Under the pieces are notes generated by a model. It was not told the origin of the DNA and ran no database searches. It was given only the letters and a program-made list of their open reading frames with translations. Of a stretch of 64,000 nucleotides of DNA, positions 47,870 to 52,289 are shown piece by piece; position 1 is the first letter of the stretch, and the number at the start of each line of letters is the position of its first letter. Origin of the DNA: Epiperipatus broadwayi. Taxonomy: Eukaryota; Animalia; Onychophora. The DNA is taken from the NCBI GenBank assembly GCA_028023455.1, contig JAQFVV010000003.1:19096001-19160000 (forward strand), written 5' to 3'. Made by a program: the position numbers and the translations under genes.

Positions 47870-49147
47870 TGATTATTTATCTTTTCTACATGTGTGTGGT
47901 CATGTGTACCAGTTGTATGAGATAGTGTGGATAGATGGAGGGTGCTTGAAAATCTGAGTTCAAATTCTCTGTACTTCCAGTTTAACTCCAGGTTTGTGAA
48001 GAGTGCCTGATTTTCAAATATTTACACATAAAGCTTCTATCCTGCTTATCCCTCTTCTATGTATTTGAATGGATAATGTCCTATACATCAGAGGTCAGAA
48101 TGACTTGAGTCAACATGGGCATGGCAATAATATTGGCATTAACATGGGATTTGGATTTTTATCAGATTTTCAATGATATGGATAGCTGAAAAGTTGGAGG
48201 TTGGAGTAGATTGTAACCTGCCCATTAAAGTATGAAGATTTGCTATCTTAATATAAACTGAGCACTGATTATATATGTGTGTGGGAGATGATAATCTGGA
48301 CCAACTGATGAGTGCTGGTGATTATTTATCTTTTTTACACGTGTGTGGTCATGTATATCAGTTGTATGAGATAGTGTGGATAGATGGAGGGTGTTTGAAA
48401 ATCTGAGTTCAAATTTCCTAGGTTTGTGAAGAATGCCTGGTTTTCAAATATTTATGATAAAAAAGAGAAAAAAATTGCTGCTATAAATAGATTTAGGAAT
48501 TGTGAATTTTGGAAGACTAGTCCCTCTTTTCTACTTTCATATAGCCAGGGTTATTAATCTTACAATAAGATCATAAACTTGTATTCTGATGTGCAGGATT
48601 TATCAATGGTATTAATATTACTTTTGAAAATATATATGATAGATACAGTATCTTGCCATGTTTTACTGTTTTTTTTGATAGCAGTAATCTAATTCACATC
48701 ATTCTGCTTCTGAGTCATATGTTTAAGTATGAGAACTTAATGTTCTGTGTTATTGTGAAACACTTAATAGTGCTGGTGTCTGGCTCTTAATTATTCCTGC
48801 TTACATGGGTGGCTCAAAGGGAAAGGGATATGAATTATTGATATAAAAATAATTGAATGATTCATTGTGTGGATGTTTATAAACAGTTCAAACATTTGTA
48901 GACATTGTGCTCGAAAATCCACAACTCTACCCCTACACTAAACCATGCAGAGAAATTACTGTCATCAAATGCTGATTTATTGAAACTAGAGGAAGAATAA
49001 TGTTACTTTCCTATGATATTTAATGATTGTTATTGCATGTTTACTATTTATGTTATTGCTTTTTTTATTTAATATTTGTTTTTGTGTATGTGTAAATTTG
49101 AATTACAAACTCAATATATATATATTTAATTTGTTATTTCTTTTCAG

Positions 49148-49174
49148 ATTTGATGAATCTTATAAGAGAGAGAG
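49148..49174 (+). other. 5' UTR portion of the coding exon, after a splice acceptor
   Basis: ttgttatttcttttcAG ends at 49147. In-frame stops (tga tga, taa) lie between the acceptor and the ATG at 49175, so the upstream intron is in the 5' UTR. Confidence 0.6.
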
Positions 49175-50953
49175 ATGGAAGAGCATCCTCATGAAAATAT
49201 TTCATTACTTCATTTTCTTAATTTGCTGAAAAATTCTAGAGATAAAACAGGAATCAGCATTTCCGATTTGGAAAAACACTTAAACAATACGCCAGATACT
49301 ATTAAAAGAGATATTGAAAATTATGGATGCATTCATAATTTTTTGTTAACACATAATGACATTTTTACAATTGTTAAAGATAAAGTTGTCTTAGCTTCAG
49401 ATTTGAATGTAAATTCATCATCTGGAAACACTGAAGGTTCATCACTATTGGTCAATCTTTTGATCAAAGAGTTGACCCAAAATAATAGTTTGACACTTTT
49501 TAATATCTTAAATTTAAAAAATGAACTTCCATTGGCAGAAAAGGAAAAATTGGGTAAGGGGGTAAAAGATTTATTGAAGTTTTTTGAAGAAAATTATTTA
49601 CTTTTTAGAGTATCAAGAAATAAACAGGTTTATTTACGTTCAACTTGTGAACAAAAACTTTTGGAAAAAATAATAAAAAATTTTTCATGTCATAAAATGT
49701 TATTGGAAGAATTGATTAAATATTTACAGCAATATTTCACTGAAGTTGAAAAAGAGCAAATAGGTTTATTAAGTGGTAATATAAGAAATTTTATAACAGA
49801 TAATTATAATGTTTTTTATTTAGATAAAGATAAAGTTTATTTAAGAAATGTATTAACCAAAAATGAAACATTCTCTACAGATTTAAAAACATCAGTTTCA
49901 AATTCTAAGTATTACGGCCATGGGAAAATTATAGAGCTATGGAAAAATTTTGGCCTAATTTTAAGAAAAGAAGATTTTGTATATTTTGATACTAATGCCA
50001 TTAAACAAAATGATGATTTTAATCTTGGCAATGTTTTTGAGATTGGAGATGAAGTTCATTATGAAGCTATCAGCTGTTCTTACTTTATTAGAGATGGAAA
50101 TGAGAAGTGCTATAATGCTAAATTTCAAGCCATTTCTATATCATCTTACATCTCAAAAAGCCCTTTAAACTGTCATGATGAAATAGAGAATATTGATTTA
50201 AAAAATATAGAAATATCACCCAGAAATAGTATTCACTCTTTTCATTCAATTGAGTCAAGAAAACCAATCACAATTAACAATTTTTCTGGTAATGTATTAA
50301 TTTTAAGTCATTTATATGGTATTATTCAAACTGGCAATTCCTTTTGTGATAATATTTTATTTTCCTCCAACATCTGTTTTTACAACCAGGAAAAAATCTA
50401 TAATCTTTTTAACGTTCTCAAAGATAATGATGTTGTTCACTTTGATGCTATCTGTACAACCCATGAAAAATCATTTAAATGGCAAGCAATAATTGTTTGG
50501 ATTGGTGAAAAACCCCAACACAATAATTCTAAACTATCATTTAGTCTTGAATCTCCCAAATTTTTAAGAAGGATTTCAAGCCCTAAAGTGACTAATGATA
50601 GTCTAATAGATTTATTTGATTCAAGCTATGAAATGACTAAATCCCAATATCCATATTTTGATTTGAGCAGTCATGTTTCTTTACAAGAATCTCATAGTGG
50701 TTATTGCTCTCTTTCTCATCACAGTGCTGCAGAAGATTTATTAGGTATTTCCTATCCCAATACATCTGATCCTTCTCTTAAATCTTTTTATTATAATGGT
50801 TCAGATGATTATCTTGAAAGTTTTTCAAAATCTGCATTAAAAAATTGCCCGTCATCAAATCTTGATTCTGAAAATTATAATGACTTTTTTATAGATGCTG
50901 AGTGTCAAACTTTGTCAACAGGAGATATTTTAAGTTTTAAATTTTTTCACTAA
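49175..50953 (+). CDS. Egalitarian-related protein: 3 winged-helix repeats + 2 cold-shock/OB-like folds + Ser-rich linker + LC8-binding-like tail
   Basis: Uninterrupted 592-aa ORF. Repeats end HNFLLTHNDIFTIVKDKVVL / KFFEENYLLFRVSRNKQVYL / RNFITDNYNVFYLDKDKVYL. Two OB-like units (GKIIELWKNFGLI..VYF..GDEVHYEA; GNVLILSHLYGII..ILF..NDVVHFDA..KWQAIIVWIGEKP). C-terminal IDAECQTLSTGDI. Confidence 0.85.
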   Translation: MEEHPHENISLLHFLNLLKNSRDKTGISISDLEKHLNNTPDTIKRDIENYGCIHNFLLTHNDIFTIVKDKVVLASDLNVNSSSGNTEGSSLLVNLLIKELTQNNSLTLFNILNLKNELPLAEKEKLGKGVKDLLKFFEENYLLFRVSRNKQVYLRSTCEQKLLEKIIKNFSCHKMLLEELIKYLQQYFTEVEKEQIGLLSGNIRNFITDNYNVFYLDKDKVYLRNVLTKNETFSTDLKTSVSNSKYYGHGKIIELWKNFGLILRKEDFVYFDTNAIKQNDDFNLGNVFEIGDEVHYEAISCSYFIRDGNEKCYNAKFQAISISSYISKSPLNCHDEIENIDLKNIEISPRNSIHSFHSIESRKPITINNFSGNVLILSHLYGIIQTGNSFCDNILFSSNICFYNQEKIYNLFNVLKDNDVVHFDAICTTHEKSFKWQAIIVWIGEKPQHNNSKLSFSLESPKFLRRISSPKVTNDSLIDLFDSSYEMTKSQYPYFDLSSHVSLQESHSGYCSLSHHSAAEDLLGISYPNTSDPSLKSFYYNGSDDYLESFSKSALKNCPSSNLDSENYNDFFIDAECQTLSTGDILSFKFFH

Positions 50954-51018
50954 ATATTTATATTTTTGGAAAGATTATCGTAAATTTTAAAAAAAAGTCA
51001 TTGTACAATATAGTTTTT

Positions 51019-51024
51019 AATAAA
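51019..51024 (+). promoter_or_regulatory. Candidate polyadenylation signal AATAAA
   Basis: First AATAAA, ~65 nt after the stop codon. AATAAA is common in AT-rich DNA. Confidence 0.4.
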
Positions 51025-51178
51025 AATTATTTTAAGAAAGATTTTTATTGTCATGTTTTTTTTTTCTGAATCCTGAAAAAAAAAAAAACCCCAGTGATAC
51101 AATATTTTATATAAAGGAAATAGATTCAAATAACTTCATATAACTATTGTCTAAAAACTTCTTACATGTATCAGTTTT

Positions 51179-52289
51179 TGTTATATTTTGTAGAAAATAT
51201 ATTAGACTTTAGTAATTCGAGAGCTATAAGTTATAAAGCTAAGTTTTATTTCAGAGAAAAAACAGTAATGAAATGTAAATACATATCTAGTTTAAAAAGC
51301 AATAAAAAGATGTGAATGTAAAGAGATATGTAAGTTTTAAAAAGTAATGAAAAAATAAATTCTGTAAAAATAAAGCAAACTTTATTTTAATAATTTAAGT
51401 TTAAGTCTAATTCAATGAAGAAAGATTGGTTTGCAGATAAATTAGACTTAAACAGATAAAGATTGTAAGTTAAAAGCATTCTATAAAAGATTGCCAAAAG
51501 ATAATGCAAGTGATTATTTTCAAGGCCGGATGTGGATTTAAAATACCAAGAAAACTTGTTAAAATCAAACTATTTTAGTAGAAAACAAATTGAATATTTT
51601 TTGAAGCTAATTGCTGTGGAATGCAAACGGACATAATTAGAAGCCGGATCCTTATCAGCATTGTAAAGATGCATTAGTAAAATGGGTTTATAATTACATT
51701 GGAATGATATGAATTTTTTTAAATGATAGCAAACAAGGAGAAAACAGTATAAATAGTACGCGCAAAAAAAGAATAGCGTCATCAGCTTTTCTCCACTCAT
51801 TGCATGCTGTTGTGTTACTGTCATAAGGACCTTTGAGAAAAGTTGAGGGGAGAAGTGGCTCTAGGTTTTTCTGCAATGATGGAAGTGTCCCAGAATCCAT
51901 GTCTCTGAAGGTGAAAGATAGTCGGCTAGGGAAAATGTTTATAGACCTTACCAGTCATTTATTATTTGTGTTTGCCTAAGAAAGTCCAATTAGGATTTTG
52001 TTGTAAGTACTGTGAGTATAAACTTTTAGTATTCACTTAGGTCTACCACTATTTTAATGGCAGTATTTGTTTGGTGCTGATTATAGCATAGAAGATTTAG
52101 AACTTTAAATCGAGGACTAATTGTTAAGGTGTATATAAATTAACTATGGATCGTTATTTAGTAAAATCTTAATTGATGTTTATATATATATAATATGTAA
52201 ATAAATGTATTCTTATTTAAGAACGTTTGGGGTAATTAATAAATTTATGATAATCATTGGTAGTCAGCCTCATAGCTGAATATACAACA
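51179..52289 (+). repeat. 5' LTR (~1.1 kb)
   Basis: Colinear with 55159-56174 plus 58081-58188. Ends gctgaatatacaaca. Confidence 0.9.

Follow-up and report, generated by a model that had tools for sequence, protein, structure and literature searches.

Does a long open reading frame in the onychophoran Epiperipatus broadwayi encode a further version of Egalitarian (Egl), the best understood adaptor choosing mRNAs for dynein transport, or a protein that retains only parts of Egl? The frame lies in a window of 64,000 nucleotides, the whole stretch of DNA that was analyzed. An original prediction had described its product as an Egl-like, domain-swapped paralogue with three N-terminal repeats, two central OB-like units in place of the exonuclease domain and a terminal dynein light chain motif, which may link a different class of RNA to BicD and dynein and possibly belongs to a lineage-specific, retroposed family.

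Gene structure and expression

The elements of the gene are as follows.

49175-50953, forward strand: coding sequence, 592 aa plus stop, in an open frame of 595 codons behind the TAA at 49163-49165
49132-49147, forward strand: polypyrimidine tract and AG splice acceptor of the coding exon (ttatttcttttcag), located with transcript-like contigs
51019-51024, forward strand: candidate AATAAA polyadenylation signal; contig cover fades at about 50976-51027, which is suggestive only

The intact reading frame occupies a single coding exon, and the in-frame TAA shuts the frame 5' of the ATG. From the composition (28% GC), random codons would be stops at a rate of about 8%, and the chance of 592 open codons was estimated at about 1e-22; the longest other open reading frame between positions 40 and 60 kb in the window has 103 aa. 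Transcript-like contigs from two runs begin to match at about 49146, at the ttttcag acceptor, with 161 unmatched upstream letters in a run with 0 mismatches and 126 in a run from a related species. The runs amount to about 100 Mb against a genome of 5.6 Gb, and their contigs here are restricted to the gene; the RNA origin of the runs is a guess ('RNA?'). The gene is not intronless, as it has a spliced 5' UTR intron; the 5' UTR exon preceding the coding exon was not located. The single coding exon noted in the prediction is confirmed. An A13 run is found at 51077-51089, 125 nt past the stop and about 55 nt past the AATAAA. The long frame, the spliced 5' UTR, the gene-confined contigs and an orthologous contig of the related species, open over 1612 nt with no frameshift at 4% divergence and with pN/pS of about 0.43 over codons 4-172, together led us to judge the locus to be a real, expressed and functional animal gene.

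Winged-helix modules of the N-terminal half

An AlphaFold2 model of the 592-aa protein, built on a 58-sequence alignment, contains helix/hairpin modules at aa 5-79, 91-154 and 157-223 and two five-stranded beta-barrels at aa 245-324 and 366-443, all mostly at pLDDT >85 and with domain cores at pLDDT >90, followed by disorder over residues 451-592. This agrees closely with the repeats (7-73, 88-155, 158-225) and OB units (245-325, 368-447) delimited in the original prediction.

49187-49411, forward strand: winged-helix module 1 (aa 5-79), ED2-type Egl domain; Pfam WH_Egal E=4.5e-10, 40.3 bits
49445-49636, forward strand: winged-helix module 2 (aa 91-154), nearest ED3; WH_Egal 15.4 bits, hhalign ED3 94.2%
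49643-49843, forward strand: winged-helix module 3 (aa 157-223), nearest ED3; WH_Egal 13.8 bits, ED3 HMM 22.6 bits

Against the Pfam WH_Egal cut-off of 27 bits, module 1 scores above and modules 2 and 3 below. Structure superposition aligned model residues 88-156 with Egl 7-79, the ED1 domain (Z 10.2, rmsd 1.6 A, 68 residues), and residues 154-226 with Egl 92-167 (Z 11.0, rmsd 2.6 A, 72 residues). The repeats are thus Egl-type winged helices, as had been proposed, both by the profile score of the first and by superposition on Egl ED1/ED2 at Z 10-11.

The modules were typed with ED HMMs built without the protein itself. Module 1 of this protein alone scored 22 bits with ED3, 16 with ED2 and 13 with ED1, which is ambiguous; the clear ED2 call comes from a paralogue and from the three-sequence profile, since hhalign with module 1 of the three paralogues gave ED2 at 98.3% (score 72.5) versus 48.6 for ED3 and 33.4 for ED1. 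The loop length of module 1, counted from alignments, also follows the ED2 pattern and not that of ED1. Altogether the modules type as ED2, ED3 and ED3, with ED1 the weakest profile for every one of them, and the N-terminal half is made up of three Egl-type (LOTUS-like) winged helices, all ED2 or ED3 in type. No ED1-type, BicD-binding module was recognizable among the three in these profile comparisons. In Egl, ED1 binds BicD CC3, and ED1 and ED2 read the RNA minor groove (PMC13186709). A diverged ED1 may still have some residual function here, but the predicted link to BicD found no support in the ED2/ED3/ED3 arrangement.

Central OB folds

The two central units were also as predicted, their models matching CSD and S1 structures at Z of about 9.

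49907-50146, forward strand: OB fold 1 (aa 245-324), CSD/S1-like five-stranded barrel, from a separate domain model
50270-50503, forward strand: OB fold 2 (aa 366-443), CSD/S1-like barrel, the most conserved domain of the family

OB folds filled all 50 top rows of the structural comparison, and the top matches spanned the whole domain. For OB1 these included the S1 domain of archaeal exosome Rrp4 (Z 9.2, rmsd 2.3 A over 75 residues), the Lin28A CSD (Z 8.8) and Unr CSD1 (Z 8.1); for OB2, the S1-like domain of DBC1 (Z 9.7), the Lin28B CSD (Z 9.3, rmsd 2.0 A over 71 residues) and CspA (Z 9.1), with superpositions at Z 9.0-9.7 and 2.0-2.1 A over 64-71 residues. The same five-stranded barrel is found in the Unr/CSDE1 and Lin28 CSDs and in the S1 domains of Rrp4 and DBC1 at Z 8-9.7, values near the zone that the tool rates as 'middling'. 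The best Foldseek matches were the tandem CSDs of Drosophila Unr, an arrangement that OB1-OB2 resembles.

At the sequence level, in contrast, Unr/CSDE1, Lin28 and S1 domains gave no significant profile match to OB1 or OB2: the Pfam CSD, S1 and S1-like profiles had none at E<=5, and the family profile reached the UNR/CSDE1 CSDs in the PDB at E of about 0.05-0.3. Some relatives of the protein do match CSD, S1-like or DUF7930 in Pfam. A CSD-like HMM scored the protein at 77 bits, a value inflated by the inclusion of the protein in the HMM. OB2 was the best-matching stretch for most of the 103 relatives described below, with blastp identities of 30-44%, or 32-44% for three named relatives, and retains the near-invariant residues G372, G382, F396, L411, F423, A425 and W436. 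Aromatic residues occur at the expected OB strands 2 and 3. Of the canonical KWFN and RNP1 motifs only part remains, with FGLI/YGII found on strand 2 and VYF/ILF on strand 3. We infer only from the fold and these aromatics that the OB folds would bind RNA.

C-terminal tail and light chain element

The Ser-rich tail and its terminal motif, both noted in the prediction, were located within the disordered region, with IDAECQTLSTGDI at aa 573-585.

50525-50884, forward strand: disordered Ser-rich linker (aa 451-570), pLDDT 31-47, aligning poorly among paralogues
50885-50950, forward strand: conserved C-terminal element (aa 571-592), a CQT-anchored site with an STGDILSF-K-FF extension, aligning to Egl 960-979

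The C-terminal FIDAECQTLSTGDILSFKFF aligned to residues 960-979 of Drosophila Egl, the dynein-light-chain (Dlc) site, with 14 of 20 residues identical and with C577 and S581 as the counterparts of Egl S965 and S969. The Egl site (LVDAESQTLSTGDVVITKIF) and the Egl N-terminus are both present in PDB chain 9rvy_D. A phmmer search of the PDB with the whole protein gave no match, whereas the last 37 aa had Egl 960-979 as their sole match and the family profile reached Egl at E=2.9e-43, the C-terminal element being matched separately. The egl2pt mutant carries S965K and S969R, and the role of Dlc is Egl dimerization (bioRxiv 10.1101/550277). The Egl features named in the prediction, its N-terminus and a C-terminal AESQT site near S965, were verified against 9rvy_D and the egl2pt paper.

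Conservation of the motif was likewise confirmed: across 62 family sequences its Q and T never vary, and it always sits 15-44 residues before the C-terminus. Where the textbook anchor reads TQT, this one reads CQT; C occupies the first position in 34 of the 62. C577-Q578-T579 fall within a disordered stretch (pLDDT <50), which fits the xQT anchor of LC8 clients, and the genome contains an intact canonical LC8 gene (89 aa). A complex prediction with two copies of this LC8 and two of aa 553-592 (score 0.02, mark 0.34) weighs neither way on binding. The element is a homologue of the Dlc site of Egl and, from its sequence, a predicted LC8 site.

Family membership and paralogy

A profile search of 1.84 billion proteins identified 103 relatives (E<=1e-10 for 40), in which winged helices are followed by a CSD-like domain and then by the QT motif. 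Uncharacterized relatives occur in ticks, a scorpion, a horseshoe crab, a centipede, a priapulid and spiralians. A word-based search with the 592-aa protein had no match; this method needs shared 5-mers, and the HMM search does find relatives. The same search with the 58-sequence alignment was blank and uninformative, probably using only the first 500 of 2373 gap-rich columns.

The family is already known and barely studied. In the planarian Schmidtea mediterranea, egal-1 (dd_8302; paralogues egal-2 and egal-3) was published in Development in 2025, the family controlling regeneration polarity; Egal-1 has three Egl-like modules at its N-terminus, a central region of 67-71 aa that is not an exonuclease, is conserved in spiralians and has a fold that the paper leaves unnamed, and a C-terminal dynein-light-chain motif (PMC12579938). 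Compared with this published description, the onychophoran protein has the same design: three Egl-like modules, a central domain of about 70 aa that is not an exonuclease, and the C-terminal motif. The gene is an additional member of this Egalitarian-like (Egal) family and a paralogue of the dynein RNA adaptor Egl.

In a profile census, the spiralian relatives Lingula XP_013412851 and Schistocephalus A0A0X3PHY1 share their central domain with OB2. Spiralian Egal proteins have ED1-ED2-ED3 and one OB fold, whereas the onychophoran protein has ED2-ED3-ED3 and two, at about 20% identity; ED1 is strong in planarian and other spiralian Egal proteins (90-127 bits) and not in the subfamily studied here. 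The closest architectures are those of Rhipicephalus KAL1470773, Haemaphysalis KAH9360970, Centruroides XP_023224473, Tachypleus XP_076313560, Strigamia T1J227 and Priapulus XP_014669431, with 1-3 non-ED1 winged helices, 2-5 CSD-like barrels and, in most, a QT-STG C-terminus. Their domain numbers differ from those of the onychophoran protein, identities are 20-30%, and none has been studied. The family is thus widespread in protostomes, and the predicted lineage specificity applies only to a local tandem triplication.

A canonical egl lies on the same contig, at C3:12,049,620, 7 Mb from the gene. Its exon matches Drosophila Egl at E=1.2e-77, encodes three WH_Egal domains, all strong, as well as the first part of a DEDD exonuclease (AVDCEG), and also matches Egl 525-614 and EXD1. 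Canonical egl has very long introns, and its C-terminal exon was not found within 40 kb downstream of the first. Since canonical egl sits elsewhere on the contig, the gene under study is a paralogue; the two kinds of gene coexist in one genome and are not mutual replacements. Drosophila Egl (9RVY-9RWB; PMC13186709) likewise has three tandem Egl-domain winged helices and a disordered C-terminal region with the Dlc/LC8 element, but it is 1004 residues long, possesses ED1, and carries an exonuclease-homology domain and a tetrahelical XAD where the 592-residue protein has two CSD/S1 OB folds. No PF01612 match was obtained for the latter, and its model shows only barrels at 245-443 and then disorder. 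Canonical orthology was rejected for lack of ED1 and of the exonuclease/XAD and because of the separate egl locus, in line with the prediction of a domain-swapped paralogue.

The gene has two tandem paralogues, 651 and 538 aa long, with the same C-terminus, and acceptor-like sites stand just upstream of the ATG in all three copies. These sites and the spliced 5' UTR intron speak against a processed retrogene and leave the predicted retroposition unsupported; the three fast-diverging copies, only 28-30% identical to one another, arose by local DNA duplication.

Proposed function and alternatives

Considered as a whole, the gene is probably a functional Egal-family paralogue encoding an LC8-dimerized RNA regulator without Egl-type BicD docking. 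LC8 would clamp two copies of the protein via the CQT strand, as for Egl, and yield a dimeric, multivalent RNA-binding protein in which the ED2-type helix domain would read double-stranded RNA and the OB folds would hold single-stranded RNA. Because no ED1-type module is recognizable, docking on BicD in the Egl manner would be absent, and LC8-dependent regulation of mRNA localization or translation would therefore be more probable than the role of a classical Egl-BicD-dynein adaptor.

A true Egl-like adaptor, as in the original prediction, in which a diverged winged helix binds BicD and a different class of RNA recognized by the OB folds is carried along microtubules, appears unlikely. It would accord with the ED fold common to all three modules, including the 1.6-A fit on ED1, with the retained LC8 element, with the non-zero ED1 score of module 1 (13 bits; hhalign 87.6%) and with planarian Egal-1 working together with microtubules (PMC12579938). 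However, the ED2 and ED3 profiles outscore ED1 in every module, the loop of module 1 fits ED2, and the strong ED1 of spiralian Egal is absent from this subfamily. We give still less credence to a LIN-66/Unr-like regulator acting translationally or post-transcriptionally, in which the OB folds do the work, LC8 is only a dimerization hub and there is no transport. The Unr CSDs were the best Foldseek matches, and a nematode Lin-66-like winged-helix cluster (PF26288) ranked second in an Atlas feature search at 0.86, where values below 0.9 are leads only; 20% of its members are also WH_Egal, and a shape search aligned OB2 to it (rmsd 2.6 A over 86 residues). C. elegans LIN-66, a cytoplasmic RNA regulator, has a functional CSD, required for eIF3-linked translation and heterochronic control (PMC11184513; 10.64898/2026.07.07.737059), and, to judge from the Pfam names attached to that cluster, Egl-related winged helices. 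In LIN-66, however, the CSD precedes the helical region, the reverse of the order found here, and the likeness was drawn from the sub-0.9 Atlas leads.

That the frame is a decaying or non-functional duplicate, whether retrocopy or relaxed paralogue, surviving by chance is very improbable. The low identity of the tandem copies, the blank word-based search, the fairly high pN/pS and the A13 run after the stop would be compatible with decay, but 592 open codons in 28% GC DNA, an orthologue free of frameshifts, a spliced 5' UTR, and well-modeled cores with the family-invariant OB2 residues and T579 all retained argue against it.

It was not until 2026 that a structure of Egl bound to BicD and RNA was solved (PMC13186709). 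The present locus contributes the identification, from structural models, of the central region of the Egal-like family as a cold-shock/S1 OB fold, the coexistence of canonical egl and Egal-like genes in one genome, and a subfamily that keeps the LC8 element with no recognizable BicD-binding ED1. Taken together, these findings separate the two partner sites of Egl in evolution, which offers a natural test case for LC8 binding on its own. More speculatively, and with rather low confidence, the tandem trio could stand for a branch of the Egl superfamily not described before, one that kept LC8-driven dimerization and lost the BicD-docking ED1, and in which tandem cold-shock folds took the place of the exonuclease/XAD RNA clamp. 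The ancestral core of Egl-type proteins would then lie in LC8 dimerization and not in coupling to BicD, and these proteins, perhaps with nematode LIN-66 among them, would make up one superfamily of regulators in which winged helices and CSDs jointly read double- and single-stranded RNA. If so, the fast diversification of the tandem copies would be a hint of a function in the germline or in conflict.

Domain architecture of the window protein

The window gene (49175-50953, forward strand) runs from ATG to TAA over 592 codons in a region with a G+C content of ~28%, where about one in 12 random codons is a stop; the second-longest ORF in the surrounding 20 kb has just 103 codons. An in-frame TAA at 49163-49165, 10 nt 5' of the ATG, means that no residues could be added by an upstream coding exon. 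The AlphaFold2 model, obtained with a family alignment of 58 sequences as input, bore out the ORF, modules and barrels of the original prediction, with borders agreeing within a few residues:

aa 5-79, 91-154 and 157-223: three modules of four helices plus a hairpin (winged helices WH1-WH3), mostly at pLDDT 88-96
aa 245-324 and 366-443: two beta-barrels (OB1 and OB2)
aa 451-592: disordered remainder

WH1 matched the Pfam model WH_Egal (E=4.5e-10, 40.3 bits vs a cut-off of 27), WH2 and WH3 matched it weakly (15.4 and 13.8 bits), and structure comparison superposed all three on the domains of Drosophila Egalitarian (Egl) in solved Egl-BicD-RNA complexes. Model residues 154-226 aligned with Egl 92-167 (Z 11.0, 2.6 Å, 72 residues) and residues 88-156 with Egl 7-79 (Z 10.2, 1.6 Å, 68 residues).

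In a Foldseek search of the PDB with the whole model, the top matches were Drosophila Unr, through its tandem cold-shock domains (CSDs), and ribosomal protein S1, through its tandem S1 domains. Residues 240-450 were also modelled separately and compared, without Foldseek, against 48,161 chains. OB1 resembled both the S1 domain of archaeal exosome Rrp4 (Z 9.2, 2.3 Å, 75 residues) and the CSD of Lin28A (Z 8.8). OB2 resembled the S1-like domain of DBC1 (Z 9.0-9.7), the CSD of Lin28B (Z 9.3, 2.0 Å, 71 residues) and CspA (Z 9.1). All of the best 50 structure matches were OB folds spanning the whole unit. The family profile reached UNR/CSDE1 CSDs in the PDB at E ~0.05-0.3. Pfam CSD and S1 models matched neither barrel and, therefore, it is by fold and weak profile similarity that OB1 and OB2 are assigned as CSD/S1-type OB folds, standing, as had been proposed, in place of the exonuclease.

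The final 20 residues, FIDAECQTLSTGDILSFKFF, matched a single PDB sequence, Egl 960-979 (LVDAESQTLSTGDVVITKIF), and the family profile independently reached the same site, in agreement with the proposed C-terminal motif for dynein light chain (LC8, or Dlc); both ends of the protein are homologous to Egl. The Dlc-binding mutant egl2pt carries S965K and S969R in Egl (10.1101/550277), positions that align with C577 and S581 of the window protein. Amongst 62 related sequences, the Q and T of the anchor were invariant, preceded by C in 34 and by T in 16, and the element ran on as S-T-G-[DE]-I-[LIM]-A-T-x-[LI]-[YF], always at 15-44 residues from the C-terminus. LC8 usually binds an eight-residue strand, and the extended QT-STG element is much longer than this. 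The extension 3' of the anchor (window 50906-50950, aa 578-592) is conserved from fly Egl through all Egal-like proteins.

Paralogy, gene structure and transcription

A search of the entire assembly with WH_Egal revealed another locus at C3:12,049,620, 7 Mb upstream on the contig that carries the window (G000:C3). The further related genes on this contig, with their positions in other stretches of the assembly (L-numbers), were:

L011:5620-6969 (G000:C3:12049620-12050969): first coding exon of canonical egl, with ED1-ED3 and the start of the exonuclease domain
L005:1441-3396 (G000:C3:19160503-19162458; window-equivalent 64503-66458): tandem paralogue 1, 651 aa, three barrels (OB folds)
L003:1444-3060 (G000:C3:19200686-19202302; window-equivalent 104686-106302): tandem paralogue 2, 538 aa

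The upstream exon, of 449 codons, encodes three Egl domains, all with strong scores (72.8, 71.4 and 57.7 bits), followed by the exonuclease motif AVDCEG..., and matched Drosophila Egl across ED1-ED3 at E=1.2e-77, with a second match to Egl 525-614 and EXD1. By sequence, this locus is identified as canonical egl and the window gene as an Egl paralogue rather than an orthologue, as originally predicted. No later egl exon was found within 40 kb of the first. Three consecutive non-LTR retrotransposon ORFs (endonuclease, reverse-transcriptase-like; L011:653-2909) lie 2.7 kb upstream of that exon.

Parts of the stretch were present in ten small public runs, four of which were aligned to the window-gene locus. 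Their contigs mapped to the ORF and to its immediate surroundings, and also to a repeat past 51180. One run showed 0-2 differences per contig and thus comes from this species or one very close to it, and two others yielded contigs of 958-1612 nt, ~4% divergent, with the ORF free of frameshifts. The contigs of two runs lost their match at 49146, just past ttatttcttttcag, and continued upstream with 161 and 126 extra letters, which has the appearance of a non-coding 5' exon joined on by splicing. The sole label on these runs is 'RNA?'; an RNA origin is argued for by the splice-like break, by remnants of Illumina RNA adapters and by gene-restricted cover (100-Mb data sets, 5.6-Gb genome). Amongst the differences listed in codons 4-172 (30), 11 were synonymous and 19 non-synonymous, a rough pN/pS of ~0.43; the gene is under constraint yet fast-evolving.

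The tandem paralogues, 15 kb and 55 kb downstream of the window gene and outside the window, share 28-30% identity and the C-terminus with the window protein. Both have a pyrimidine-tract-AG site 1-33 nt 5' of the ATG, like the acceptor used by the window gene, as would be expected if a gene whose first exon is non-coding had been duplicated in tandem at the DNA level. The sites, together with the spliced-looking 5' exon, do not fit retroposition and leave the proposed retroposed origin unsupported. Loose ends of contigs from runs X3 and X10 at 50931 continue into the C-terminus of the 538-aa copy (SFSLYLND*), which suggests that this copy, or its orthologue, is also transcribed.

Other features of the locus included a short out-of-frame upstream ORF (49153-49194, ATG at 49153, 13 codons) within the portion of the coding exon that forms 5' UTR; this ORF overlaps the main ATG at 49175 and may damp translation of the window gene. 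An A13 run lies at 51077-51089, 125 nt 3' of the stop, and the dispersed repeat at 51180-51500 gave many short divergent contigs at high depth in all four aligned runs.

Relatives in other animals

A profile built from the three copies and searched against 1.84 billion representative proteins returned 103 relatives, 40 of them at E<=1e-10. All 103 were annotated with HMMs for ED1, ED2 and ED3 (built without the window protein) and a CSD-like HMM, revealing two main designs, both annotated as uncharacterised. The first consists of ED1-ED2-ED3, one CSD-like barrel and the QT element, with domain scores of 90-127 bits (e.g., Lingula XP_013412851, Neoechinorhynchus KAL7669405 and Schistocephalus A0A0X3PHY1, the last recorded as 'Egal-1 winged helix domain-containing protein'). 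The second, to which the window protein belongs, has 1-4 non-ED1 winged helices, 2-5 barrels and usually the QT element, and was found in ticks (Rhipicephalus, Haemaphysalis, Dermacentor), the scorpion Centruroides, the horseshoe crab Tachypleus, the centipede Strigamia and Priapulus. With relatives in these animals, Lingula and others, the suggestion of a lineage-specific family found no support. Additionally, five relatives (P0009, P0010, P0098, P0061 and P0003; 934-2119 aa) carry 7-14 Egl-type winged helices in tandem; one such protein is from amphioxus (Branchiostoma XP_019619473), so the range of the Egl domain extends to deuterostomes, where its architectures differ.

Proteins of this kind have already been published, as the description of planarian Egalitarian-like-1 by Reddien and colleagues (Development 2025; PMC12579938) indicates: three Egl-like N-terminal modules, a central non-exonuclease region, with 67-71 aa conserved in molluscs, annelids and brachiopods, and a C-terminal dynein-light-chain motif with 75% identity to fly. 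There are two paralogues, and knock-down of Egalitarian-like-1 causes ectopic notum at posterior wounds, as do microtubule poisons (PMC12579938). The main text of that paper makes no mention of any fold of the cold-shock, S1 or OB type. The window protein adds to this known, almost unstudied family; new here are the assignment of the fold, a multi-barrel subtype lacking ED1 and the coexistence of that subtype with canonical egl. A possible further relative is C. elegans LIN-66, whose function depends on its CSD (PMC11184513; 10.64898/2026.07.07.737059) and whose Atlas cluster holds Egl-related winged-helix families.

Proposed separation of the LC8 site from the BicD-binding module

Module 1 of the least diverged paralogue scored 61.6 bits with the ED2 HMM vs 22.5 with ED3 and 6.1 with ED1, and is thus clearly ED2-type. 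Hhalign of the three copies' modules paired WH1 with ED2 (98.3%), WH2 with ED3 (94.2%) and WH3 with ED3 (89.3%), ED1 being the best match for none. For the window protein alone, WH1 typing was ambiguous (ED3 22, ED2 16, ED1 13 bits); counted on alignments, its spacing from the conserved H to the FL motif is that of ED2, vs the longer ED1. ED1 is the part of Egl that contacts the coiled coil of BicD, and adjacent RNA minor grooves are read by the ED1 of one chain and the ED2 of the other (PMC13186709), for which reason RNA binding needs a dimer. A protein without ED1 would have no evident way of docking on BicD in the Egl manner, and the proposed BicD link is unsupported.

Since Dlc dimerises Egl (10.1101/550277), binding of the CQT strand by LC8 would likewise be expected to yield a window-protein dimer, with RNA bound by the ED2-type module and the OB folds and with Egl-style BicD docking absent. 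The protein is of interest mainly because it separates the LC8 site of Egl from the module that binds BicD. The genome has an intact canonical LC8 gene of 89 aa (L015:1489-1758). Separate from it, seven divergent Dynein_light (LC8-like) matches of 52-93 bits lie within 135 kb on one contig (G000:C12470:215306-349578; L016-L019, L022, L023 and L025), and this cluster may represent an LC8-like family that has expanded in the genome, as the Egal-like genes have.
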